In this document: positions 14,834-32,500 of the stretch, in pieces
Numbering within the stretch: the stretch's first letter is position 1
Layout: the number at the start of each line of letters is the position of its first letter
From: Rebecca billardiae RCC1528
Lineage: Eukaryota; Protista; Haptophyta
Direction of reading: 5' to 3'
Length of the DNA: 64,000 nucleotides
Assembly: GCA_965240325.2 (NCBI GenBank)
Contig: OZ251224.1
Span: forward strand, 2,294,001-2,358,000
Notes under the pieces: generated by a model
What the model was told of the DNA's origin: nothing
Database searches by the model: none
The model's input: only the letters and a program-made list of their open reading frames with translations
Position numbers and translations under genes: made by a program

Positions 14834-16888
14834 CTACATGAGCGGCTTGAGCAGCATCGCGTTGAGCGACTGCTGCTGCCGCTTGCGCTCCTCCTGGATG
14901 CGAGTCACCTCGGCCGCCTTGGCATCCTCGGACTTCTGCAGCCGACCCTCAAGCTCCTTGCGCTGCGTCTCAAGAAAGTCGTGCGTAGTGCCCGAGCCGC
15001 CGCTCGCCAGCGTCGACGTGAGGGACGCGCTGCCCGGCCGCGCGCCGCCGGCCGCCGCGGCGCCGTCCGCGGGAGGGCCCGACTTGAAGCCAGCGCCCTG
15101 CGACGCGCTGACCGCGCTCATCGCCTGCTGCCGCTTCTGCAGCAGCAGCAGCTCGCGCTGCCGCCTCATGTGCTCCGCGCGCCGCTTCACCTCAAGCTCC
15201 TGCGCGGTGGCGCGCGCGCGCGCGGCGAGGGAGGGCGGGCGCGACACGGTGCGCGCCGGGTGAGGCCCGTGCCGCTGCGCAGGGGGAGGCGGCACGGCAC
15301 GGTGCGCGGGCCGCGTGCGCGCGCGCACCGCATCCGTGATCTCGCCGCCCTGCATCGACGTGCTCGCGGCCACACCCGCGGTCGGCCCGCGCATCGCGGC
15401 CGACTGCTGCATGGACGACGCGCGCGCGCCGCCGCCGCCGCCGCCCATCAGCTGCGCGTGCTGCTCGCGCTTGCGGATCTCCTCCGCGCGCCGCGCCGCG
15501 TCCTCCGCGCGCTTGAGCGAGTTGAGCTGCGTCTCTGACGCCTTGCGCGGGTCTGCGACGAACATCGTGGGCATGTGCTGGCGCGCAGACTGGCTGACGT
15601 TCGCGGCGGCGCGCGCGGCGGCGGACATGGCGGGCTGCACCTTCGCCGGCTCGAGCGCCTCGTTCGACGCCGCCGCGTCCGCGGCCGCCTGCCGCGCAGC
15701 TCGCACGGAGCTCACCAGGCCGCTCGCGTCTTCGTCAGCCTTGGCGGCGGCGGCGGCGGCGGCGCCTCCGCCGCCGCTCGGTGGCTTGCCCGGGGAGCCG
15801 AGCGGAGCGGCGTCGAACCTGGCCATGGGCGCGATCGGCGTGGGCTCGGGCGGCTGCACCGGCTCCGGCGCGGCCGGCGGCGGCGACGGCGCCGGCTCCG
15901 CCTTCTTGGTCGCCGCGTCGAGGAAGGCGCCCGCCTGTCTCGCCGCCTCCGCCTCCTTGCGCGACGCCTCGAGCGCCGCCTCCAGCGCTGCCTCCTCCTC
16001 CGCCTGCTCGCGCTTGACGGCCTCGTCGTGCTCGGAGCGCTTGGCGGTCTCGAGCTGGAGCGAGAGCGCGAGCACCATCTCCAGCTCCGCCTGCTCGCGC
16101 GCGCGCTGCGCCGTCGCCACGTCGTCGGTGCCGATCGGGCCCATCTCGGTCGTCGCCTCGGCCATCGAGAGCTTCATCGCGCGCTCGAGCTGCTTCTCAA
16201 AGTCGTCGGCGAGGGCGGCGTCAGGGGCGGCGCCGCCGGGCGGCGGGCTGGCGGGCTGGCTGTCAGCCGCGCCGCCGCCCTCCTGGAACTTCTGCAGCAT
16301 GCTCATCGCCTCCGCCTCGAGCTCGGCGTTGCGCTTCACCATCATCTTCTTGAACGAGAGGAAGTCGTCGACGACCAGGAGCTGCTCGAGCACCTGCTTG
16401 GAGAGCGTGGAGGACGGGTTGGAGGCGATGGCCTCGTGGAACTGCAGGGTCGTCACGCCCATCTCGTTCAGGTGGAACTCGAGCAGGTTCTCGACCATCT
16501 CCTTGAACGCCTGCGCGCCCGCCCGCGCGACGCGCGCGGCGCGCGATGGCCTAAGCGCGCGCCCGGCGCCGCACGCGCTGCGCTCGCTCAGGACTCGAAA
16601 ACGAGACGCGCGCGCACATCGTAGATCTCCATGTACGCGAGCTTGTTCTCGTCGTCGCCATCGAAAACGATGCAGTTCTCGTCGATGAATGACTGCCCGT
16701 GCAGCGCGCGATGCGCGGGCGCGCGGGTGGGTGGGTGGGTGCGCGCGCGCAGCCCAGCACGCCTCGCTCTCGCGCAGGGGCGCGCAGGCGCGTCGCGAGC
16801 GGGGACGCACCATCACGGGGAGCGCCCACGAGGGAGACTGCAGAAATTGCTGCACGCTCTCGAACAGCCAGTCCGCGTCGGACGCCAT
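14834..16888 (-). CDS. CFAP36: Cilia- and flagella-associated protein 36 (BART domain), three introns
   Basis: Spliced N-terminus WLFESVQQFLQSPSWALPVM / SFIDENCIVFDGDDENKLAYMEIY / FKEMVENLLE...LLVVDDFLSFKKMMVKRN; UIM-like helices; C-terminal ELEVKRRAEHMRRQRELLL. Confidence 0.88.
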   Translation of the reverse strand: MASDADWLFESVQQFLQSPSWALPVMVRPRSRRACAPLRESEACWAARAHPPTHPRARASRAARAVIHRRELHRFRWRRREQARVHGDLRCARASRFRVLSERSACGAGRALRPSRAARVARAGAQAFKEMVENLLEFHLNEMGVTTLQFHEAIASNPSSTLSKQVLEQLLVVDDFLSFKKMMVKRNAELEAEAMSMLQKFQEGGGAADSQPASPPPGGAAPDAALADDFEKQLERAMKLSMAEATTEMGPIGTDDVATAQRAREQAELEMVLALSLQLETAKRSEHDEAVKREQAEEEAALEAALEASRKEAEAARQAGAFLDAATKKAEPAPSPPPAAPEPVQPPEPTPIAPMARFDAAPLGSPGKPPSGGGGAAAAAAAKADEDASGLVSSVRAARQAAADAAASNEALEPAKVQPAMSAAARAAANVSQSARQHMPTMFVADPRKASETQLNSLKRAEDAARRAEEIRKREQHAQLMGGGGGGARASSMQQSAAMRGPTAGVAASTSMQGGEITDAVRARTRPAHRAVPPPPAQRHGPHPARTVSRPPSLAARARATAQELEVKRRAEHMRRQRELLLLQKRQQAMSAVSASQGAGFKSGPPADGAAAAGGARPGSASLTSTLASGGSGTTHDFLETQRKELEGRLQKSEDAKAAEVTRIQEERKRQQQSLNAMLLKPLM

Positions 16889-19513
16889 GCTACCACAGCG
16901 ACGACACCGACGCCCCCGCGCGCGCACCGCTCTCCCGCCCTTGCTCAGCGATCTAGATCGAGACACTGAGTCCGGGCCGGACGGGGTACAGTAGCCGGAC
17001 GCACGATGGCGGCGCCCACTGTCATGGCGGTTGCAGCCAGCAGTCCATCTTGCCCTCCAAGAGGCACAGTGGCATCTGTCAGCCAGCTGTGCCGTCCGAA
17101 AAGGTACTCGTGCAGCAGCATCGCATGCGCCGCGGATGCGCGAGCGCGCCGCAGAACAGCATCCGCGGCGCGTGCGATGCTGCTGGACGAGTCAGAGTAC
17201 TCGTCGCTAAGTGCTAGTGGTGCGCCGGCCGTGCCGTGTTGCGCTGGGCCAGGGGTGACTATGATCGCACCGCCCTGCAGCCAGCTTGGGCATTGTGCCG
17301 CTGGCATGAGGCGCCGCAGTTTATTGGGACGGCGTCCTGGATGATGAGTGCGTCGCGCTGCTGCGCGCACAGCACCCTGGCCCCAGCCTGCCACGTTCCG
17401 GCGCAGGCGATGGGAGCGTGCCTGCTGGCCGTGTGGCTACCACCGGAGCGGTTGCTGGGCGCACACAACATGACCGGCATGCGCATTGTGCGTCAGTCGG
17501 CCGCGCCATTAGCAGAGCAGCTCTCAGAGCTACTGCTGGCTGCTGGGCACCAGGGTCATGCTCAGGGGAGTGACTCAGGCGCGCACGTCGCGCGAGCCGG
17601 TTGCCCACCGCGCAGCTGCGGGCACGGCAGCTGGCGATCAGTGTCATGGTTTGATGCGCGTGTTGCGCGAGCCGGCTGCCAGCTGGGGCTCGGCGTGCAG
17701 GCCATGTGGGGCAGTGCAGAGACTGCTAGCACCTATTGGATGTGCGGATGTGCGCCGCAGACGCTGCTATATCCACAGCCGAGCGCGCACAGTCCACATG
17801 TGCACGTGTTGGGCGCTGGATCCAAGGGGTCGCAGAGTCTCAAGACTGCCCCCTGGCACGTCCTCTGCAGAGCTGCGCCGGGCATGGCGCGATTGCAGGG
17901 ACGCACCGCCACCGTCGGCCAGTGCGTGATTCCGGTCGTGCGAAGGTGGTCGTGGCAGCCACGTGATACAGTACGGCCCTTGCATGTGAGGCAGTGCCCT
18001 GCGCATGGGGGGCGGACGAGGGCAGGAGTCCGGGAACCAGAGCGGCTGGGTGCGTACCAGCCAGGCCCTGCACGGCTCTCCGGCCGTCGTTTGCATCTGC
18101 ACGGCGCTCCCGCTTGGCCGCTTCCGGATCGGACATCCGGATCTCGGCGCCTGTTGGCCGAGTTGCAGCCACAGGATCTGGCGGCGCATCGGGATTCGGG
18201 AACAGGCCTGTGCTGGTGTGGTCGGACGCTGCGTGCGAGCCGGCAGCGACCGGCTCCGACCACCATGGACTTCGTCAGTGCCGGCCTCGTTGGCAGCCTC
18301 AGAGGTGGTTTCATGCCTCGGGCTCGGCTGTCGTCCCTCCTGAGGGATGGCCAAGCTGCGGCTGCGCCGACAGTATATCGGGCAACTCTGGCTCTTGGCC
18401 GCGGCGGCAGTGTACCAACACAGCCTGCCCTGCTGGTTGACATCAGGTGTCGCACTTCATTGACTACATGAGCGCGCTCACTGGGCAGTGGGCTGATCAA
18501 GGACAGGTGGTCTGACTGATGCCTTCGCTGCCTGCTCGGCAGAGGGACGGGCAGCCGCCGTCCACAGCTGCGCGGCGCGGGCAGGCAGGGTTGCACCACA
18601 GCCGCGAAGGCGCGCCAGCTGGCATGGAATACGCGTTCGACACCGTGCCGGTCGGCACGACGGCACGTCGCCGGCTCTGACTGACAGCAGTGAGCAGCGC
18701 CTGCCGTGCGACGTGCCCGCATGGCCCGTGTCACGTGTGCCCGCCGGGTCACGGGTGGCGGGTGCCCCTCACTCCTCAGGGCCTCGGTTGGTGGGTGGAC
18801 CCAGCTGGACGTTGAGCCCACGCTCCCTCCAGTCGGAAGTCACCCACAGGGCCACCAGCATCGTGCGCGGTAGATAAGCGCACGACGTCCCCGCCCTGTC
18901 AGTTCGGGGAGGCCTCCTCACCGGAAGAGACACTCACAGCTCAGGTGTGCAGCGAGATTGACGCCCTTAATCCCTTATCATCAAGCGACAAGTGATCTCG
19001 GTGATGATTTACCCGCTGCTTGTGCGAAACCTACGACCAAGTTAATTTTTCAAGTTCAGCCGTCGCATTTTGAACTTGAACACATTGTTTTACTATAATC
19101 GTTCCTCCACCGCTGATAAGCGGGTGAGCACGACGCGCTTGGTGCACAGCTTTGGTCGATCACGGGGCGCCCCCGTTATCATACCCCCAAACGGTATTTT
19201 ATCTTTGTGAGAGCTGAGTAGTTGACCGTATGTGATTGACGTAGCTGGATGTTCTCCCTTCCCTCTCGCTTTCGTCGAATATTCTCGATGGTATCCCCGG
19301 CCGGTTGAGGTGTAGGGTGAAAGTACGCGCGAACTTTTGACCGGGTAAGTACCCGGCAACTAACCCGGAACACAGAACCTCTCACCGCTCTGAGCGGTAT
19401 TGTACGACACGACGGTCCAACCCTTTCACACTCCGCGACCCAACCTTCCGGTTGTGTGACGTTGAATTCGGGCACATCACGCCCTCGAGGCTTGAATTCC
19501 CACCGGGGTCGGC

Positions 19514-21765
19514 ATGGCTCCCACCTCGCCTCGCCTCGGCGCAAATGCCAATAAGGTGAACGGCGACCGCGTGGTTGGGCATGCCGACGTTGAGTACCGC
19601 GCCAATGCTTCTGGCCGCGCAGCAGCTGACGACGACGCTGGGCTCGTCGGCGGCAACGCCAACCGCAAAGCTCGTCAGTCGGCGCGACGCACGTGGTCGG
19701 CGGAAGAGGACGCGAAGCTGAGAGAGGTATGCCTTGCTCATTGCAAGAGCCCCGCGCACATCCACGCCGCGTGTAGCCCCGCGGCCAGGGTGCGCGAGCG
19801 GAACCACGGGCGGGCCGGCCACCGCCCGGCGCCGAACGCGCGCAGACACATTTCTTCAGCGGGCGACACGTGTGTGCAGCTCACCTGAGCGCCGGACTCG
19901 CGCCAACCACGCGCTCTTGACGCCGCCGCTCCGCCGCTCCGCCGCGCGTCCGTCGCGTCACTCCCACAACCGCACGCACGTGCGCGCAGGTGGTCGAACG
20001 GCTCGGTGCCAAGCAGTGGGCGCTGATCGCCGAGCACATGGGTGTGCGCCCCGTGCGAGCGCACCGGGTGCATGGGGGTGATTGTTCATGAAACCTTCGG
20101 CCCATCGAGCACTCACGCGTGCGCCCGCGCCTCCCGCTCGCCTCCCGTGCGTGCCGACTGCGCGCTCAGGAGGGAGTCGCAAGGACTGGCAGTGCCGCGA
20201 GCGGTGGCTCAACCATCTCGGCCCAGCGGTGAACAAGGGAGTCTGGTCGGCGGACGAGGACCAGGCACTCATGCAGGCCGTCCAGGACCTTGGGCCGGTG
20301 CGCGCAGGCCCCGCGTCGTGCGGCGCATGGAGGACAATGCGATCGAATCCTCGCGCGAGCAGCGCCGAGCGCGGCGCGCGTGCCCACCATCCCTCCGTCA
20401 TCGTAATCCGATCCGCGCGTCCTCGTCACCCCACGTGCCCGCAGCGATGGGCGCAAATCCGGCTGCTGCTGCCCGGGCGAACGGGGCATGGGGTCAAGAA
20501 CCGATACCATTCGCTCAAGCGGAGCAGCTCCGCCCTTCACGGGCTAGGGGCCCAGCAGGCGAGGGTGCCGATCGCGATGCCACTCGGTGGCGGCGGTGCG
20601 GTCGCGTCCGTCGCTGGCGTGCTCGGAACGGCGGGCGGTGTGGCGGCCGACGCGGCGCAGCCCATGCTCCCCGGACTGGGCGCGATGGGCGTGGCGGCGT
20701 TGCCAGCGGGCGCGGGGCAGCTGTACATGCACGGCGGTGGCGTGGCGGCGGATGCTTCGATCATGCGGAGCAGCGCGTGCGCGCCCGGCGCAGCCACCCA
20801 GCAGGCGCTACACGCCGTCGCCGGCCAGCAGCCGCACGCGGATGGCGCCGCCAACGGCTTGGCGTTGGGCCCGCCCGAGATTATGATGGCGGCGCTGAGG
20901 CAGCAGCAGCAGCTGGTTGCGCTGATGTCTGGCGCATGGTCCCGGCAGATCTCGGGGCCGCCCCAGCAGATGCTGCCGTGTGCTGCCCCGGGGCATCCGC
21001 ATTGTGCCAACAGCCTCTCCTATGCCGCGCAGCAGCTGCCGCGCTGCCCGCGCATCGCCGCGCTGCAGCCGCAGCAGCAGCCACAGCACCACCATGGCGT
21101 GGGTGCAGGTGTCGTGCGCGCGCACGTGCGGACCTCTGTGAACGTCAACTTCTGCGACAGCGTCACGGGGAGCTCAGAGCCGAGCGCCTCGTGGGCCGGG
21201 CCCAACGGGTTGCATGCAATCGGTGGATTCGGTGCGCCGGCCAGTGCGAGCGCGGTGCACGCCACCGTCGTGGCGGCGCCCGGAGCGGGTGCGCATGCGG
21301 GCACGCAGGACGGCGCCTACGCATCGGCCAATGGCAGCGCACATGCCCGCCTGACCAACGTCGCGGCGGCGGCGGTGCAGCAGGCGGAGCAAGCTGCCTG
21401 GGCAGCGCCGTCGCGCGCGACGAAGCGCGGGCGTGCTGCTGAGGACGACTGGGTGGAGCTGGAGCAGTATCCGCGCGCGCAGCCGCCCCGCTCGCTCTCG
21501 AAGTGCACGCAGCTCAACCTGCTCGGGTACACGCTTCCGGGCATGTTCTCGCCTCCCGTGACGTCGACTGCTCACCTTGCTCTCTGCTCGCAGCCCGACT
21601 CTGCGGCTGCAGTGGTCGTGGCGCAGGCTGAACTCGACGGCGCTGAGGGGGATGGCGGGGACACGCGCGAGGGCGGGTGGGGTGGCGGCAGCAGCCGCGG
21701 GGCACACTGCGACGGTGGAATGCGTCCTTCGCCTACGGTGATGCTGCTGCAGGAGCAGCGGCGGC

Positions 21766-21799
<34 letters not shown>

Positions 21800-22124
21800 G
21801 CAGCAGCAGGCGCGTGCGCTTCACCTCTATGCGGACTCCACCAACAGGCCACCTCCGCCCAGGCCACGCACCATCAGCTCGGCCCAGCCGGCGCCGGCAG
21901 GCGCAGCTGCAGGTACACCGCCGCTGCTGCCGCAGGAGAGCTTGCTGCTCGCGCCGGGCGCCAATGTGCAGCGCCAGCGCATTGTCGAGCTCTCATCGAA
22001 GCTGCTTTCGCTCGCTCAGGGGGACGGGCAGCCCCAGGGTGACGAGCTGCTCGAGGATGTGCTCGGCGAGCTACGTGCGGCGGTCGAGCAGCCGCACGCA
22101 GATGCGGACGCGTCGGCCAGCTAG
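19514..22124 (+). CDS. R2R3-type MYB transcription factor (introns 19727-19989, 20042-20169, 20298-20444)
   Basis: Spliced repeats WSAEEDAKLRE/VVERLGAKQWALIAEHMG/GSRKDWQCRERWLNHL and WSADEDQAL...RWAQIRLLLPGRTGHGVKNRY; low-complexity Q-rich tail. Confidence 0.92.
21768..21809 (+). repeat. (CAG)n polyglutamine tract in the MYB gene
   Basis: Ten CAG, one CCG, three CAG. Confidence 0.9.
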
Positions 22125-22595: not shown

Positions 22596-23463
22596 TACAG
22601 TTTACTAAGAATAAGAGACGCACACAGCTCAGGCAGGCGAGATTGACGCCCGCCAACTGTCACCGCCCATGAAGCCGTCGCCGATGGTAGCACCGCCGGA
22701 AGATTCGTTCAGCCGGCCTGCGAGGCCTGGATGAGGGCTGCGTATGGAGCGTTCGTTGGAACTTGACGCCGGTTTGGCGCCCGCGCGGCGAGGGCGACGA
22801 CGGGCGTACACTGGGCCCGCGGCGGCGGGAAGCGCGCGGGCGCGGCCGAGAACGGCACGGTCCGGACGCCTCTCGCCAGCCGCGGACGCGCACCGCGCCT
22901 CCTCCTCGCACGCTGCTAACTTGATCCGGGTTAAACGGTGGTTTTGCTGCCGACCAGCTCAAGTTCCACGGCTGGTCAAGGTTCGGCTTGCGACCTCGCC
23001 GCTGGTGCTTGCAAGAAGGTACATGAGTTGGTCGAACTCCCACGCACCCGCTCTGCGCTCGTCGACGCCCTCTGAAGGTGACTCGGGGTGCATGCGGGGC
23101 AGTGGAATGCAGTGGTTCGGCGTTGCCTCTCAGTCGTCCAGCGCGCAGGCCATGTAGCGCGGGTGTGGTGCGCGCATGGCCCGGTAATTCGGTCGCGGCA
23201 TATCTGTCTGGGCTGCCCAAGGCCTGCCGCACCGCGAAGCGAGCGCTCAGGAGCGTGTGCCGACCGTGCCAGCCCCGCCGAGATGGGGCACTTCGCTGGG
23301 AAATGCGGTGTCAAGACCCCCGCTCAAAGTTCCAACGAACGCTCCATACGCCTTTTCTGTAGGCTGTCCGCCTCAGCGGAGGGGGGCCGGACAGGCTGGC
23401 TACCTTTTCTGGAGTACAGTTTACTAAGAATAAGAGACGCACACAGCTCAGGCAGGCGAGATT
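22596..23463. repeat. Composite unit: 49-bp direct repeats enclosing a 612-bp segment with 25-bp terminal inverted repeats
   Basis: Identical 49-mer TACAGTTTACTAAGAATAAGAGACGCACACAGCTCAGGCAGGCGAGATT at 22596-22644 and 23415-23463; GCGTATGGAGCGTTCGTTGGAACTT at 22740-22764 is inverted at 23327-23351. Confidence 0.8.
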
Positions 23464-23732: not shown

Positions 23733-26700
23733 ATGGGGTGGCTGAGGCGAGGTACGCGCGAGCTCGATGAGTATATCCTCGTCACAGATCCGGGGCCAGA
23801 TCCGGACGACGTCAAGGTACGCTCCCGCAAGCCGCGCGCGCGCGTGCGTGCGCGCGCGCCTCTGTGGCGGGTGAGTGCTGACGTGTGCCACCCCCCCTTG
23901 CCGCGCCAGGCACTCTTGGTGCTGGCGATGCTCCACCGCCAGCGCGCGCTGTCGCTGCGCTGCGTGATCGCCAATGGCGGCGCGCAAGCCGAGCGCCGGG
24001 CGGCCCTCGCGCGCTGCATCCTCGACGTGGTCGGCGCGCGAGACGTCCCTGTGGGCGTCGGCTCTGAAGGCTCGCCCACGCCGGCGCAGCCGCACGAGAC
24101 GGCGATGCCAGGCTTCGAGGCGGTGGATCGCTCGACGCTGCGGAGGGGCGCCGCGCTGCTGCGCTCCGAGTTCGAGCGCGCGCGCCCGCGCAGCCTCACC
24201 GTCATCCTGATCTCGTCGCTGCGTGACTTTGCGGACATCTGCCGCGAGGCGCCCGAGCTCGTGCGCGCCAAGGTGGCGAGCGTGGCCATCCAGGGCGGGC
24301 TCGAGCGCGACGAGCGCTCGGCGTCGGGCTGGGCACCGGACGCCGCGGTGAACAACCGCTTCGACATCGAGGCCGCGCGCGAGGTGTACGACTTCGTCTT
24401 TGCCGCCGGGCTGCCGACCAGTGTCACGTCGCGCACCGCGGTGCCGCTGCTGCCGATGCAGCTCGCGCGCTCGTTCGCGGATCGCACGCACTGCCCGGTG
24501 ATGGAGTACCTGGCGAACGCGCAGTTCCTCGGGCTGGAGGGGCTGTGGCGGAAGCTCTGCGCCGGCGAGCTCCCCTCGCGCTGCACCAAGGAGTGGTACT
24601 TCGCCACCTTCTGCGGCGTGGGCCCCGCCGACTTTGAGGCGCGCGGCTACGAGCGACTCGACGCGTCGGCCGACATCGTCTCCCGCCTCAACGGCTTCGT
24701 CAAGCCGTACGACGTGGTGGCGCTGATGACGGTGCTGCCGCACACGCGGCGCTTCTTCACGCGCGCCGCGCTCACCAGCGTGCCCGCCGCCGACGGCACG
24801 CCCGTCGAGCACCTGCTGCTGCTCGAGCCGTCGCACGCGCTCGACGTGCGGCACGTGCTGCGCGTGCTGCGCGACACCTATCACGAGGTGGTCCTCACGA
24901 CGGTCGAGCTGCAGCCGCGCGCGGAGGGCGCGGCGGCGCGCGCGGCGACGCTCGGGGACAAGGCGTCCGTCGCGCGCCAACGGCTGCGCGGACGCCTCAC
25001 GCGCGTGCACGTCGACTCGCTCTCGCAGCCGCGCGAGAGCACCCTCAGCGCCGTGAGCGCCGAGCGCGGCTCGGCGGGGCAGCGCGGCTCGTCCGCGCAC
25101 GGCGGCGCGCCCGCCGACGCCGGCGTGGCCGACGAGCGCCGGACGCGAGGGCGGCGTACGTCGCACGGCATGGCGGCGGGCATGCGTACGCCCGCGACGG
25201 GCGTCATCGACGAGCCCGTCGGCGTGCGCGTCCTCGACGAGGCGGTGGAGGAGGCGCGCGCGTCCTTCTCACGAGCCACCCTCTGCGCCGCGCTGCTCGG
25301 CTTTGCGCTCGTGCTGTGCGCGTCCGGACTCCTGGCCACCGGACTCGCGCTCAAGCACGTGCTGCACGGCTCGCGGAGCAGCGTGGCGCTGGAGTCGACC
25401 GGCGTGCTCCTCATCGCCTTCGCCCTCGCGACCAGCCTGCTCGCGCTCCACCCGATCCGGCGCCACACCCTCGCCATCCGGTGCGGCCACGTCGTGAGCG
25501 CGCTGCTGGGCGGGACGGTCCTTCTGCCGGACGCAGCGTTCGGTCTCGCGTCCGCGTGCGTGCCGACGATCGTGCCGGGGGCGGTGGAGGCGCTGTGCCC
25601 GCTGCCGGGCGCGGCGGCGACGTGGCTGCTCCTCGCGCTCCTCGACGTGCTCTCCCTCCTCCTCTCGCTCCGCGAGCTCGGCTGCCCCGGCCGGCCACTC
25701 AACCAGCGCCGAGCGGTCGCGTTGCTGTGGATTCTCGTCGGCGTGAGTTCGGGCGCGCACGGCGCCGCCTTCGCCGGCCTGGTGCTGGCCGAGCCGGCGA
25801 CGCGCGCGTTCCTGCCCGGCGGCGAAGGGCCCGGCGGCGAAGGGCTGGCGCTGCAGCTCACCATCGCCGTCGTGCTCCTCCTGCTCTGCGCGCTCCTCCT
25901 CACCCCCGGGCAGAGGCGGCGCGGGCAGCTGCTCATGCTCAAGCTCTCGGGCGGCGCCGGGCCGACCGCGGCGCTTGCCCCCATCATTGGGTGGGGCGAG
26001 CAGGAGCCGCAGCAGCTGTGGCACGAGGCGTGCGTGTGCATGCACCCGCTCACGCTGGACGACGCGGGCCTGGCGATCGCGCGCTTCCCGCTCGCCGGCA
26101 GCGAGCGCGGCAGCACCGCCTCCTCCCACTACAGCGCCTTGCTGCGGCGCGGCGTCTCCCCGCACGCCCTCCGGCGGCCCGGCTGGGGCCCGCGGCTGCG
26201 GCTGTTCGCGCTCGTGGCGGCTGAGCGCCTCAGCTTGGCGCTCTCGGACGGGTGGAGGCGCGACCGGTCGGACGTCGACAGCGCGAGTACCTTCTCCTCG
26301 CCCGGCGCCGCCCATGTTCGGCCCCGAGTCCGCACGCTCGCAGCGCCGCACATGCGCGGCATCCCGACCCTGCGGGCGCTCGCGAGCAGGCCGCCGAGCG
26401 GCGCGGACGACGGCGCGCCGGGTGCCGTGTCGGAGCCCGAGCCCACCGCGCCCATCCTCGACTACTACGTGTGCCACGCGGCGGCGGACTCGGCCGCGCT
26501 GAAGACGGAGGCGCTGGCGCGGCACGCCCGCGCGTTCGCCGAGCGCCACGGCCGCCCGCCCGTCGTCTGGCTCGACCACGTCTGCCTCGACCCGTCGCTC
26601 ACGTCGGCGGAGCAACTGTCGCACATGCCGGTACGGCTCGCGCGCTGCCGCAAGCTGCTGCTGCTGTGCGGGCCGGCGGTCACGCAGCGGCTGTGGTGCG

Positions 26701-27241
26701 TGGTCGAGCTCTTCCTGTGGCACCTGCTCGGCGGCAGCACGCACGACATCGAGGTGCTCCTCGTCGCGCAAGGGCAGGACGAGGCGAAGGAGATTGTCGC
26801 CTCCTTCGACAGGTGAGCCGCGCGCGCCTTACTCCGCCCGCGCGCGCGCCTCCCGGCCCGGAGCTCCCACAGCCACCGGGCCGCCGCCGCCGTGCGGCAG
26901 GGCCGCGAGGGCGGGACGGGCGCGCGCGCGGAGTGCCGCGCCCGTGCTGCGCGCGCGCGCGGCCCACTCGCGCCCCCGCCCCGTCGCTCACCACACGCCG
27001 ACGCGCGCGCGCCCCCGCGCCTGCGTGGCCGCGCAGCTTCCACGTCATGTACGCCACCACCAGCAGCCAGACGCGCGCGGACGAGCGCGCTCTGACGCGC
27101 GCGGTCGAGCTGGCGACGGTGTCGCGCGTGAACGAGGTGGTGCGGCAGTGCATGTGGAGCGTGCACTCGGCCGCGGCAGCAGCGTCGAGAGCCGCCGTGA
27201 AGGAGGCAGAGGCGGTGGCTCCATCAGACGACAACTGCTGA
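23733..27241 (+). CDS. Nucleoside hydrolase-like domain + ~6 TM helices + C-terminal TIR-like domain (introns 23817-23909, 26813-27036)
   Basis: VTDPGPDPDD Asp-rich metal motif, LISSLRD, IQGG, NNRFDIEAA, YDVVA; six hydrophobic segments; DYYVCHA...WLDHVCLD...LLLLCGP...RLWCVVEL. Confidence 0.8.
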
Positions 27242-32230: not shown

Positions 32231-32500
32231 TGGTTTGAGGTTGGGTGAGGGTGGTGGTTGGTTGGGGGCTGGCCAGGGTAGGGCTGGAGGCTTCGGCCGC
32301 CAGCCTGATCACCCGGAGCCCGTTATAAAGGGGAATTTAAAAATACGGTTTACTAAGAATAAGAGACGCACTACACGGTTTGAGTCCTTTGGTTTGAGGT
32401 TGGGTGAGGGTGGTGGTTGGCAGGGGGGCTGGCCAGGGTAGGGCTGGAGGCTTCGGCCGCCAGCCTGATCACCCGGAGCCCGTTATTATAAAGGGGAATT
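32231..32500. repeat. ~110-bp direct duplication upstream of Sel1-MYND A
   Basis: TGGTTTGAGGTTGGGTGAGGG...CCCGTTATAAAGGGGAATT at ~32231-32338 and ~32390-32500, interleaved with pieces of the dispersed 49-bp motif. Confidence 0.85.

Follow-up and report, generated by a model that had tools for sequence, protein, structure and literature searches.

A gene of the haptophyte Rebecca billardiae RCC1528 appears to encode a polytopic membrane protein, in which two enzyme-type domains, both predicted to be cytosolic, flank a six-helix module: an N-terminal domain of the nucleoside-hydrolase fold that falls into the clade of the bacterial effectors XopQ and HopQ1, and a C-terminal domain modelled as a TIR. 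That this protein both makes and cleaves a signal of the 2'cADPR type is, in our judgement, an evenly balanced proposition; both activities, the nature of the signal and the biological role of the protein are putative. Cyclic ADPR isomers made by TIR domains are central to immune signalling in plants and in bacteria, and to our knowledge the means by which a host itself switches such signals off are largely unknown.

The gene occupies positions 23733–27241 (+ strand) of a 64,000-nt stretch of contig OZ251224.1 (2,294,001–2,358,000; assembly GCA_965240325.2), which was analysed as a whole and is referred to here as the window. Read from the sequence, it has three exons and two GT-AG introns (Table 1). 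The three parts named in an earlier, sequence-only reading are all present: a hydrolase-like domain with TDPGPDPDD, six hydrophobic helices and a C-terminal W-C-V-V-E. The neighbouring genes encode BART-domain and Myb proteins and provide no functional context.

Table 1. Features of the gene, in positions of the window
Feature	Position	Strand	Content
Exon 1	23733..23816	+	Start codon and first 28 residues, including T-D-P-G-P-D-P-D-D (23784-23810)
Intron 1	23817..23909	+	93 nt, GTACGC...CAG, in frame, without stops
Exon 2, first part	23910..24950	+	Rest of XopQ/HopQ1-like nucleoside-hydrolase-fold domain
Lid region, the family's most conserved block	24456..24716	+	Near-invariant columns of the family alignment
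Low-complexity linker	24951..25196	+	Length varies among paralogues
Six-helix membrane module and juxtamembrane segment	25197..26129	+	Hydrophobic cores ~25281-25901; AF2, hydropathy
Exon 2, last part: TIR strands/helices A to D	26439..26812	+	W-C-V-V-E 26694-26708, Glu codon 26706-26708
Intron 2	26813..27036	+	224 nt, GTGAGC...GCAG; splits the codon AG/C, after A-S-F-D
Exon 3: last TIR strand and helix, short tail	27037..27241	+	F-H-V-M-Y-A...V-E-L-A-T-V-S-R-V-N-E-V-V-R; stop 27239-27241

The N-terminal domain had been read as a hydrolase of the inosine/uridine kind; the nucleoside-hydrolase (NH) fold stands, whereas the generic inosine/uridine type does not, and PDB, profile and NCBIfam searches all place the domain in the XopQ/HopQ1-like clade instead. 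Exon 2 of the window matched only XopQ chains in the PDB (E 1.2e-23, residues 19–303), and the NH family profile aligned to XopQ over the full domain (314 residues, E 1e-37), as against ~175 residues of the N-terminal half only for classical nucleoside hydrolases (4e-10). The XopQ model NF041355 was the sole NCBIfam match (E 1.6e-22), and its 79.8 bits, set against an equivalog cut-off of 500 bits, mark a distant member of the clade rather than a XopQ orthologue, so that substrate specificity may differ. Pfam PF01156 (IU_nuc_hydro) scored 28–30.5 bits on the window, under its cut-off of 34.2, but most homologues carry a precomputed match to it. It is by HMM searches that the domain is connected to XopQ; when the NH domain by itself was used for a word search, only pavlovophyte or unnamed proteins came back, and XopQ was not reached.

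Residue conservation agrees with this placement. The calcium/ribose motif aligns to T-D-P-N-K-D-P-D-D of XopQ, and the modified T-D-P-x-x-D-P-D-D form, in place of D-x-D-x-x-x-D-D, has been described as specific to HopQ1-like proteins (HLPs; PMC6019455). In the alignment to 7jlu_B (chain index = residue + 13; X. euvesicatoria numbering), the equivalents of D120, L345 (24543–24545), W361 (24594–24596), F366 (24609–24611), Y398 (24708–24710) and the catalytic D399 (24711–24713) are conserved and near-invariant in the family, residue roles being those assigned to XopQ (10.1101/2020.08.13.246413; 10.64898/2026.06.15.732069). Four of the five ADPR-contact residues are kept, XopQ Y311 lying in an insert with no clear match, and an NN-FD-AA block is also conserved. 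As the XopQ-site residues form the most invariant columns of the family, they argue for one common small ligand.

In a preprint of June 2026, XopQ was reported as a specific 2'cADPR hydrolase of pathogens, a Ca-dependent enzyme that converts 2'cADPR to ADPR and is dead as the D120N/D399N mutant; characterised bacterial members of the clade cut the ribose–ribose O-glycosidic bond of this TIR product (10.64898/2026.06.15.732069), and XopQ binds ADPR in its closed state (10.1101/2020.08.13.246413). The same hydrolysis of 2'cADPR to ADPR is putative for the algal domain, the activity being known for bacterial XopQ only. With the XopQ/HopQ1-like identity, the earlier idea of a unit that makes and processes an NAD-derived signal becomes much more specific. 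The algal domain has in common with XopQ/HopQ1 (PDB 4KL0, 4P5F, 7JLU; NF041355) the fold, TDPxxDPDD, both D120/D399 equivalents, and the adenine and phosphate contacts at L345, W361, F366 and Y398, and differs in lacking a clear Y311 equivalent. XopQ and HopQ1 are secreted effectors, whereas the algal domain stands at the N-terminus of a eukaryotic membrane protein with a TIR, without a type III signal or 14-3-3 region. An algal HLP clade of PF01156, haptophytes included, was noted in 2018, in a study that cut the sequences to the NH domain and did not mention the TIR and membrane parts (PMC6019455).

Since an intron splits the TIR domain of the window, its fold was modelled on P0012 (residues 848–1030), a natural paralogue from another species that shares 44% of its residues with the window's exon 2 piece and 37% with the exon 3 piece, and the window exons were searched separately. 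The AF2 model of this homologous domain (pLDDT 87.4, pTM 0.83) returned TIR domains as all of its best 50 Foldseek matches in the PDB, led by plant RPV1 and RUN1 (E 2.9e-4 at best), while VIA gave Z 10.7 over 143 residues to the RPP1 TIR, 10.2 to RUN1 and 9.7 to SARM1. Judged by this model, the C-terminal domain is of the flavodoxin-like TIR fold, and the likeness first read from the letters is confirmed, on the homologue, by AF2, Foldseek and VIA alike. The 126-sequence family profile matched the TLR15 TIR (E 0.016) and the SIGIRR TIR (E 0.026) in the PDB, both marginally, its segments DafvvhS and WCvvEL aligning to DAFISYS and WCQYEL of TLR15; the matches of the first, 16-row profile, dominated by designed helical repeats on the last helices, were set aside as noise. 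In the model, W-C-V-V-E opens helix alphaC after strand C, and its Glu, recorded earlier as retained, sits in the canonical WxxxE position, the motif of catalysis and cyclisation (10.1101/2022.05.07.491051); NAD+ cleavage or cyclase activity is a putative property of the domain. In exon 3, F125 and N154 are near-invariant in the family.

The domain shares with the enzymatic TIRs (RPP1, RUN1, Roq1, SARM1, AbTir, ThsB, SPARTA) a common fold (Z about 9–10.7), the order of strands and helices, a WxxxE in helix alphaC with Glu at the catalytic position, and an N-terminal strand motif, D-x-[FY]-[VI]-x-[HS]-S, that resembles their D-[VA]-F-[IL]-S-[FY]. In contrast to them, it is missed by Pfam TIR models, has no conserved BB-loop glycine and lies C-terminal to a six-helix module, whereas the known domains are carried on NB-ARC/LRR, SAM/ARM or Argonaute proteins. 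Pfam gave no TIR match on the window pieces, and a lax Pfam scan of 16 members gave a single TIR_2 match (E 0.052); PADLOC produced a weak ThsB match (E 0.069), beyond which neither PADLOC nor NCBIfam was informative on the TIR or on the membrane module, and no curated TIR sequence model in Pfam or PADLOC matched significantly.

The fungal HET domain is a proposed distant relative of TIRs, and the W-[LI]-D-x-x-C-x-D that follows algal strand B is reminiscent of it: the algal and HET (PF06985) domains are alike in their motif pattern, W-I/L-D-x-x-C-I/x-D/N and a hydrophobic strand with R-x-W-x-x-x-E after it. Both groups form large lineage-specific expansions, and Atlas neighbours of the algal domain bear automatic names as HET-domain or TIR-domain fragments. 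As no Pfam HET match was found at E <= 10 in the 16 rows scanned, membership was rejected and the likeness is one of motif only.

The module between the two domains was modelled by AF2 as six long helices (pLDDT 83.8), in agreement with hydropathy, and is accompanied by a conserved juxtamembrane segment of consensus LAPLLGFGS..E..P..L..EA. K+R are enriched in alternate loops, a positive-inside bias, and no signal peptide was found. Together with the six helices, these features would place both ends of the protein, and both domains, on the cytosolic side, in line with the earlier expectation that the two enzymes face the same compartment. Foldseek against the PDB gave no convincing match for the module (best E 0.08, GPCR-like noise), and the best match of a wide VIA search (Z 8.9, designed bundles) is under the meaningful level for helical proteins. 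The sole good Atlas match was another haptophyte cluster (TM 0.73). As the Foldseek and VIA matches are at noise level, no known channel or transporter family was assigned, and novelty of the fold is not claimed.

The protein belongs to a large family. At least 44 loci for the hydrolase domain were found in the 72-Mb R. billardiae genome, where the TIR profile gave 158 matches at more than 100 loci, many without an NH domain; in the protein library, this type of TIR accounts for 2354 representatives. The whole arrangement was seen again in 19 word-search matches and, with two protein searches pooled, in 57 of 161 relatives (the membrane module in 75 of 161), a recurrence far beyond chance. Every relative with an organism name is a pavlovophyte haptophyte, most library matches carrying no name. 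Paralogue identity is ~40% overall and ~20% in the membrane module. Repertoires for immunity or non-self recognition typically take the form of very large families such as this pavlovophyte one. No description of a hydrolase-membrane-TIR fusion was found in the literature, in keeping with the earlier remark that the architecture was unfamiliar from characterised proteins.

In the mechanism we favour, the TIR domain, once clustered or activated, would cut NAD+ to a cyclic isomer of ADPR linked ribose to ribose, for which the 2'cADPR type is the most likely; the aromatic-xxx-Glu motif of the algal TIR is typical of cyclase-type TIRs. The XopQ/HopQ1-like domain would then hydrolyse this cyclic product to linear ADPR, so that, with a maker and a breaker present in each molecule or oligomer, the signal might rise at the membrane as a local pulse that limits itself or is subject to a threshold. 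The lineage-specific membrane module could serve as the input, whether sensor or oligomerisation platform, or as the output. Unless the two are regulated, a protein that both makes and breaks its signal could run a futile cycle. A comparable pairing is found in type VI Thoeris, in which the TIR protein ThsB signals through 2'cADPR to the effector ThsG/DUF6650 (PF20355) (10.64898/2025.12.03.692087). In both systems a TIR that produces a signal goes together with a membrane-associated component, and both are tied to the 2'cADPR–XopQ axis; however, the algal parts are all in one eukaryotic polypeptide, and the hydrolase is integral to the algal protein, whereas against type VI Thoeris XopQ is a counter-measure of the enemy. 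Membership of the ThsG family was rejected, as Pfam gave no DUF6650 match when the whole ORF and its middle part were scanned. The type III CRISPR ring nucleases likewise provide a built-in signal-degrading enzyme, by analogy only.

More broadly, and more tentatively, the pavlovophytes may run an endogenous signalling system of the 2'cADPR type, with more than 40 receptors or effectors that each combine a synthase, a previously unseen module and a XopQ-type off-switch. That nature has fused a XopQ-like domain with a TIR, in dozens of copies in an alga, constitutes independent ‘Rosetta-stone’ evidence that the two act in one shared pathway. It also predicts that signalling of the 2'cADPR type takes place in haptophytes, marine algae of ecological importance that are attacked by giant viruses and bacteria. 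If pavlovophytes do run such a system, plant pathogens would not have invented XopQ-type 2'cADPR hydrolases but would have later deployed as effectors what were ancient, native regulators of TIR signalling, the fusion suggesting a possible origin of such effectors, and TIR cyclic-ADPR signalling would extend to a third eukaryotic supergroup. The two soluble domains, for which point mutants and analytical standards are known, make a compact testable system, and the new membrane module offers a role open to probing.

A different division of labour, which we regard as unlikely though worth serious consideration, would make the protein a receptor. The XopQ-like domain would be mainly a high-affinity sensor of (c)ADPR-type ligands, slow or inactive as an enzyme, with the ligand made in trans by other TIRs; binding would gate the six-helix module, causing permeabilisation or ion flux, and/or activate the TIR as an NAD+-depleting or amplifying effector, by analogy with Thoeris effectors or TRPM2. 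The NUDT9H domain of TRPM2 binds ADPR, and TRPM2 chanzymes likewise carry an enzyme-derived nucleotide-binding domain on a membrane module, a resemblance of concept only, with no kinship of sequence or fold. Such a receptor would fit the closed-state binding of ADPR by XopQ and the conservation of the contact residues, the ligand-lid block being better conserved than any other part of the family, the possibility that signals come in trans from the TIR-like loci, which number more than 100 and in many cases lack an NH domain, and the use of membrane-associated effectors by bacterial 2'cADPR systems. However, both catalytic aspartates of XopQ are kept, though a pure sensor could do without them, the membrane module showed no similarity to known channels or pores in Foldseek and VIA searches, and Pfam found no ThsG/DUF6650 domain.

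It is distinctly improbable that the protein instead serves housekeeping, as a membrane enzyme of two-step NAD+-to-ADPR (or nucleoside) metabolism, for calcium or redox signalling or for nucleotide salvage, outside immunity, with the large family made up of organelle- or condition-specific isoforms. Many eukaryotes use ADPR and cADPR as messengers that mobilise calcium, the genes alongside are ordinary ones (BART-domain, Myb), and Pfam found no NLR-type sensor domain attached, all of which would suit this role. The extreme divergence of the paralogues and their more than 40 copies nevertheless fit a diversifying repertoire better than metabolic isoforms, and the NH domain belongs to the immune-linked XopQ clade rather than the classical salvage clade.

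Should the TIR be non-enzymatic, serving only for homotypic scaffolding in the manner of animal TLR adaptors, the N-terminal domain would function independently of it; this we consider very improbable. The sequence matches of the family profile are to the TLR15 and SIGIRR TIRs. Aromatic-xxx-Glu is kept in 72 of 142 family members, therefore many paralogues may be non-catalytic. Furthermore, the BB-loop Gly that SARM1 (G601), AbTir (G174) and Roq1 (G52) need for the active conformation is not conserved between strand B and helix B, where the columns read D-x-x-C-x-D-P-S-L-x-P-x-E. Against these points, which a scaffold would explain, W-x-x-x-E is complete in the window copy, the nearest structures are enzymatic plant TIRs, SPARTA and SARM1, and scaffolding alone would hardly account for fusion with an enzyme whose relatives cleave a TIR product.

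The earlier claim of one spliced ORF is backed by homologues at both introns. From the ATG at 23733, the + strand ORF extends to 26816 (1027 aa, 31 residues of which are intron-encoded), the unspliced frame reading across intron 1 because that intron is in frame. These 31 residues are absent from homologues, transcripts included, which begin 15–35 residues ahead of the TDPxxDPDD motif. At the first junction, homologues pass from DPGPDPDD-I/V-K at once to (A/T)-I/L-L-I/V-L-A-M-L, and at the second they are unbroken (A-S-F/V-D-x-F-H-V/L-M; A-S-F-D-x-F-H-V-M-Y), transcript-derived ORFs included in both cases. That two or three adjacent genes were misread as one is scarcely credible, as a single unbroken frame runs from the hydrolase through the membrane module and on across the greater part of the TIR, low-GC intergenic DNA occurs only outside 23733 and 27241, and complete full-length MMETSP transcript ORFs from other strains (P0001, P0027) hold all three parts in one protein, in an order repeated by dozens of paralogues.

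The window carries on its forward strand a single gene in three parts, with the site residues of the XopQ clade in its N-terminal domain, a six-helix membrane module, and a C-terminal TIR fold with a WxxxE motif; it belongs to a very large lineage-specific family. Fusion of a TIR signalling protein with a XopQ-like hydrolase and a membrane module is previously undescribed, its component kinds being known, and a literature search found no description of a hydrolase-membrane-TIR architecture.

The gene stands out as a GC-rich block (0.70–0.80) in DNA of approximately 0.50–0.60 GC. The ORF call gave a 1027-codon frame from the ATG at 23733 to a stop at 26816, and reading the DNA directly revealed two introns, both canonical. 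Relatives, including transcript-derived ORFs, confirm both junctions: they pass from ...D-P-G-P-D-P-D-D-[IV]-K straight to the helix opening exon 2, and from ...A-S-[FV]-D-x into F-H-[VL]-M... of exon 3. The sequence-only reading of one spliced gene is thus borne out, with a gene-model artefact being less likely. Position 23733 is a credible start, since homologues begin 15–35 residues ahead of the aspartate motif. Exons were searched singly, with natural homologues substituted wherever a whole domain was needed. Intron 1 keeps the frame and contains no stop codon, so the six-frame ORF call runs straight across it and silently adds 31 spurious residues around the calcium-binding motif, an error that automated annotation of this GC-rich genome may share.

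Features of the fusion gene and its surroundings (window coordinates)
Feature	Position	Strand	Details
Long ORF with ARL2-binding BART domain	14837-16966	-	E 3e-16
Long ORF with Myb DNA-binding repeats	20082-22121	+	E 5e-10
49-nt sequence, first copy	22596-22644		perfect
49-nt sequence, second copy	23415-23463		perfect
Fusion gene	23733-27241	+	GC-rich block
Intron 1	23817-23909	+	GTACGC...CAG, 93 nt
Conserved block of the N-terminal domain	24456-24716
Membrane module	25197-26129		six helices
WxxxE motif of helix alphaC	26694-26708		W-C-V-V-E
Intron 2	26813-27036	+	GTGAGC...GCAG, splits a codon
Exon 3	27037-27241	+	stop codon 27239-27241
49-nt sequence, third copy	32344-32373		diverged

The N-terminal domain, on sequence comparison, is XopQ/HopQ1-like and not a generic nucleoside hydrolase. 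It had been read as inosine/uridine nucleoside hydrolase-like, of which the hydrolase kinship stands and the generic type falls, following structure, profile and NCBIfam searches. Pfam IU_nuc_hydro scored a sub-threshold 28–30 bits (cut-off 34.2). Searched against all solved structures, the exon-2 part matched XopQ only (4KL0, 4P5F, 7JLU; E 1.2e-23), with no classical hydrolase at E below 0.01, and a 12-row family profile matched XopQ over 314 residues at E 1e-37, whereas classical enzymes reached 4e-10 at best, in the N-terminal half only. The XopQ model was the sole NCBIfam match (E 1.6e-22); its 79.8 bits fall far under the equivalog cut-off of 500, therefore the domain is a distant clade member rather than an orthologue. 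The T-D-P-G-P-D-P-D-D of exon 1 has exactly the spacing of T-D-P-N-K-D-P-D-D in XopQ, and is the 'modified calcium-binding motif' by which HopQ1-like proteins are defined (PMC6019455). Residues were mapped through an alignment to 7JLU (chain index = residue number + 13), with roles taken from the Roq1-XopQ structure paper (10.1101/2020.08.13.246413) and a preprint of June 2026 (10.64898/2026.06.15.732069). The domain keeps equivalents of D120 and D399, both of which are changed in the inactive XopQ mutant (10.64898/2026.06.15.732069), and of the adenine contacts L345, W361 and F366 and the phosphate contact Y398; Y311, alone among the mapped residues, has no clear counterpart.

HopQ1-like proteins are known from fungi, mosses and algae, including haptophytes, in a study that treated the hydrolase domain alone, with TIR and membrane parts unmentioned (PMC6019455). 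The preprint describes XopQ and HopQ1 as calcium-dependent O-glycosyl hydrolases that convert 2'cADPR, a TIR product, to ADPR with an efficiency near the diffusion limit, with no action on 3'cADPR, cADPR, pRib-AMP or nucleosides; through this linearisation they suppress plant TIR immunity and the bacterial 2'cADPR-dependent type VI Thoeris system (10.64898/2026.06.15.732069). Eukaryotic homologues or fusions are unmentioned there.

Curated sequence models barely detect the C-terminal domain (Pfam TIR_2, E 0.052 in a single member of 16; PADLOC ThsB, E 0.069), and clear structural evidence for a TIR fold comes from modelling. AlphaFold2 was run on residues 848–1030 of a Diacronema homologue, P0012, with a 16-row alignment including both window pieces, and gave a confident model (pLDDT 87.4, pTM 0.83). 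All top 50 Foldseek matches in the PDB were TIR domains, with RPV1 and RUN1, both plant enzymes, ranking first (E 3e-4), followed by SPARTA, RPP1 and SARM1; VIA-align gave Z-scores of 10.7 for the RPP1 TIR (143 residues), 10.2 for RUN1, 10.1 for MyD88 and 9.7 for SARM1. Matches of a 126-sequence profile to the TIR domains of TLR15 (E 0.016) and SIGIRR (E 0.026) were marginal yet in register, placing D-a-f-v-v-h-S over D-A-F-I-S-Y-S and ...L-l-v-L-a-G-P-...-W-C-v-v-E-L over ...V-L-F-V-L-S-P-...-W-C-Q-Y-E-L. In WxxxE motifs such as AbTir W204/E208, SARM1 W638/E642 and Roq1 W82/E86, the Glu is catalytic and the aromatic is needed for ADPR cyclisation (10.1101/2022.05.07.491051). The TIR-like domain retaining this Glu, as first read, is therefore upheld by model and motif. 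Strand B is followed by a W-L-D-x-x-C-x-D motif reminiscent of HET domains of fungi, which are proposed TIR relatives; the domain was not filed as HET because a Pfam scan of 16 members gave no HET match.

Hydropathy and an AlphaFold2 model (pLDDT 83.8, 44-row alignment) agree on six long membrane helices, as anticipated, with a conserved juxtamembrane segment after them. Of 161 relatives examined, 75 have a homologous module. Comparison with solved structures returned nothing convincing (best Foldseek E 0.08), and the best Z in the wide VIA search, 8.9, was to designed bundles. The ESM Atlas gave one good match only (TM 0.73), another haptophyte cluster, of 576-aa proteins. Because C-type lectin domains occur in 22% of its members, the module may also be joined to extracellular carbohydrate-binding domains in other proteins. 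The gene product lacks a signal peptide, and lysine plus arginine average 2.9, 2.3, 2.6 and 4.1 in predicted inside loops and 1.2, 2.5 and 1.3 in outside loops, from which we infer that the hydrolase and TIR domains both face the cytosol, in keeping with the single compartment first proposed.

A word search found 19 relatives, those named being all Pavlovales (Diacronema lutheri, Pavlovales sp. CCMP2436, MMETSP transcripts). An exhaustive TIR-domain profile search returned 2354 cluster representatives with E no higher than 1e-3 and, at the stricter limit of 1e-30, 126; ten further proteins looked up were pavlovophyte or nameless, and UniRef automatically names one of them 'TIR domain-containing protein'. 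XopQ-like and TIR domains occur together in 57 of the 161 proteins pooled from both searches, the remainder being mostly fragments. The window's own 72-Mb genome holds at least 44 hydrolase-domain loci, at least 19 of them with a detectable TIR part no more than about 3 kb away on that strand, and at least 158 TIR-profile matches, all lower bounds. Paralogues share ~40% identity overall and ~20% within the membrane module.

We favour, at about even confidence, a reading in which the TIR domain would make a cyclic isomer of ADPR, a 2'cADPR-like one being most plausible, that the XopQ-like domain would cleave, so that one membrane protein would both produce and terminate a signal. This supports the earlier proposal of making and processing an NAD-derived signal, and the XopQ-like identity sharpens it, the activities being predicted. 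The main rival, which we consider rather unlikely, is that the XopQ-like domain serves mainly to sense a ligand and to gate either the TIR domain or the membrane module. In the full-length family alignment, the conserved block of the N-terminal domain (24456-24716) carries the mapped site residues and almost all 'nearly invariant' columns, as would be expected if every paralogue handles one common small ligand. A non-immune metabolic or calcium-signalling role is less likely, as is a purely scaffolding TIR domain. Caution over the C-terminal domain is called for in that no BB-loop glycine is conserved in the family alignment, and the aromatic-xxx-Glu is kept in just 72 of 142 members. Assays and mutants already available allow the make-and-cleave proposal to be put to a direct test.

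Elsewhere in the genome, several TIR-profile matches form tight clusters (C12:124863-133629, C11:494014-498081, C12:950867-969536 and C14:198719-204226, by contig). Some are divergently oriented short frames (about 280–300 aa) without a hydrolase domain, which suggests tandem duplication of stand-alone TIR-like genes.

The neighbours of the window copy are unrelated; those with BART and Myb domains are of ordinary kind and have no evident connection with the fusion. Just upstream of it, a 49-nt sequence (beginning TACAGTTTACTAAGAATAAGAGACGCACAC) is present in two identical direct copies at a spacing of 819 nt, and a diverged third, with 3 mismatches in its first 30 nt, lies ~9 kb downstream. 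Chance would yield none, and the sequence probably belongs to a short dispersed repeat or a non-autonomous element.
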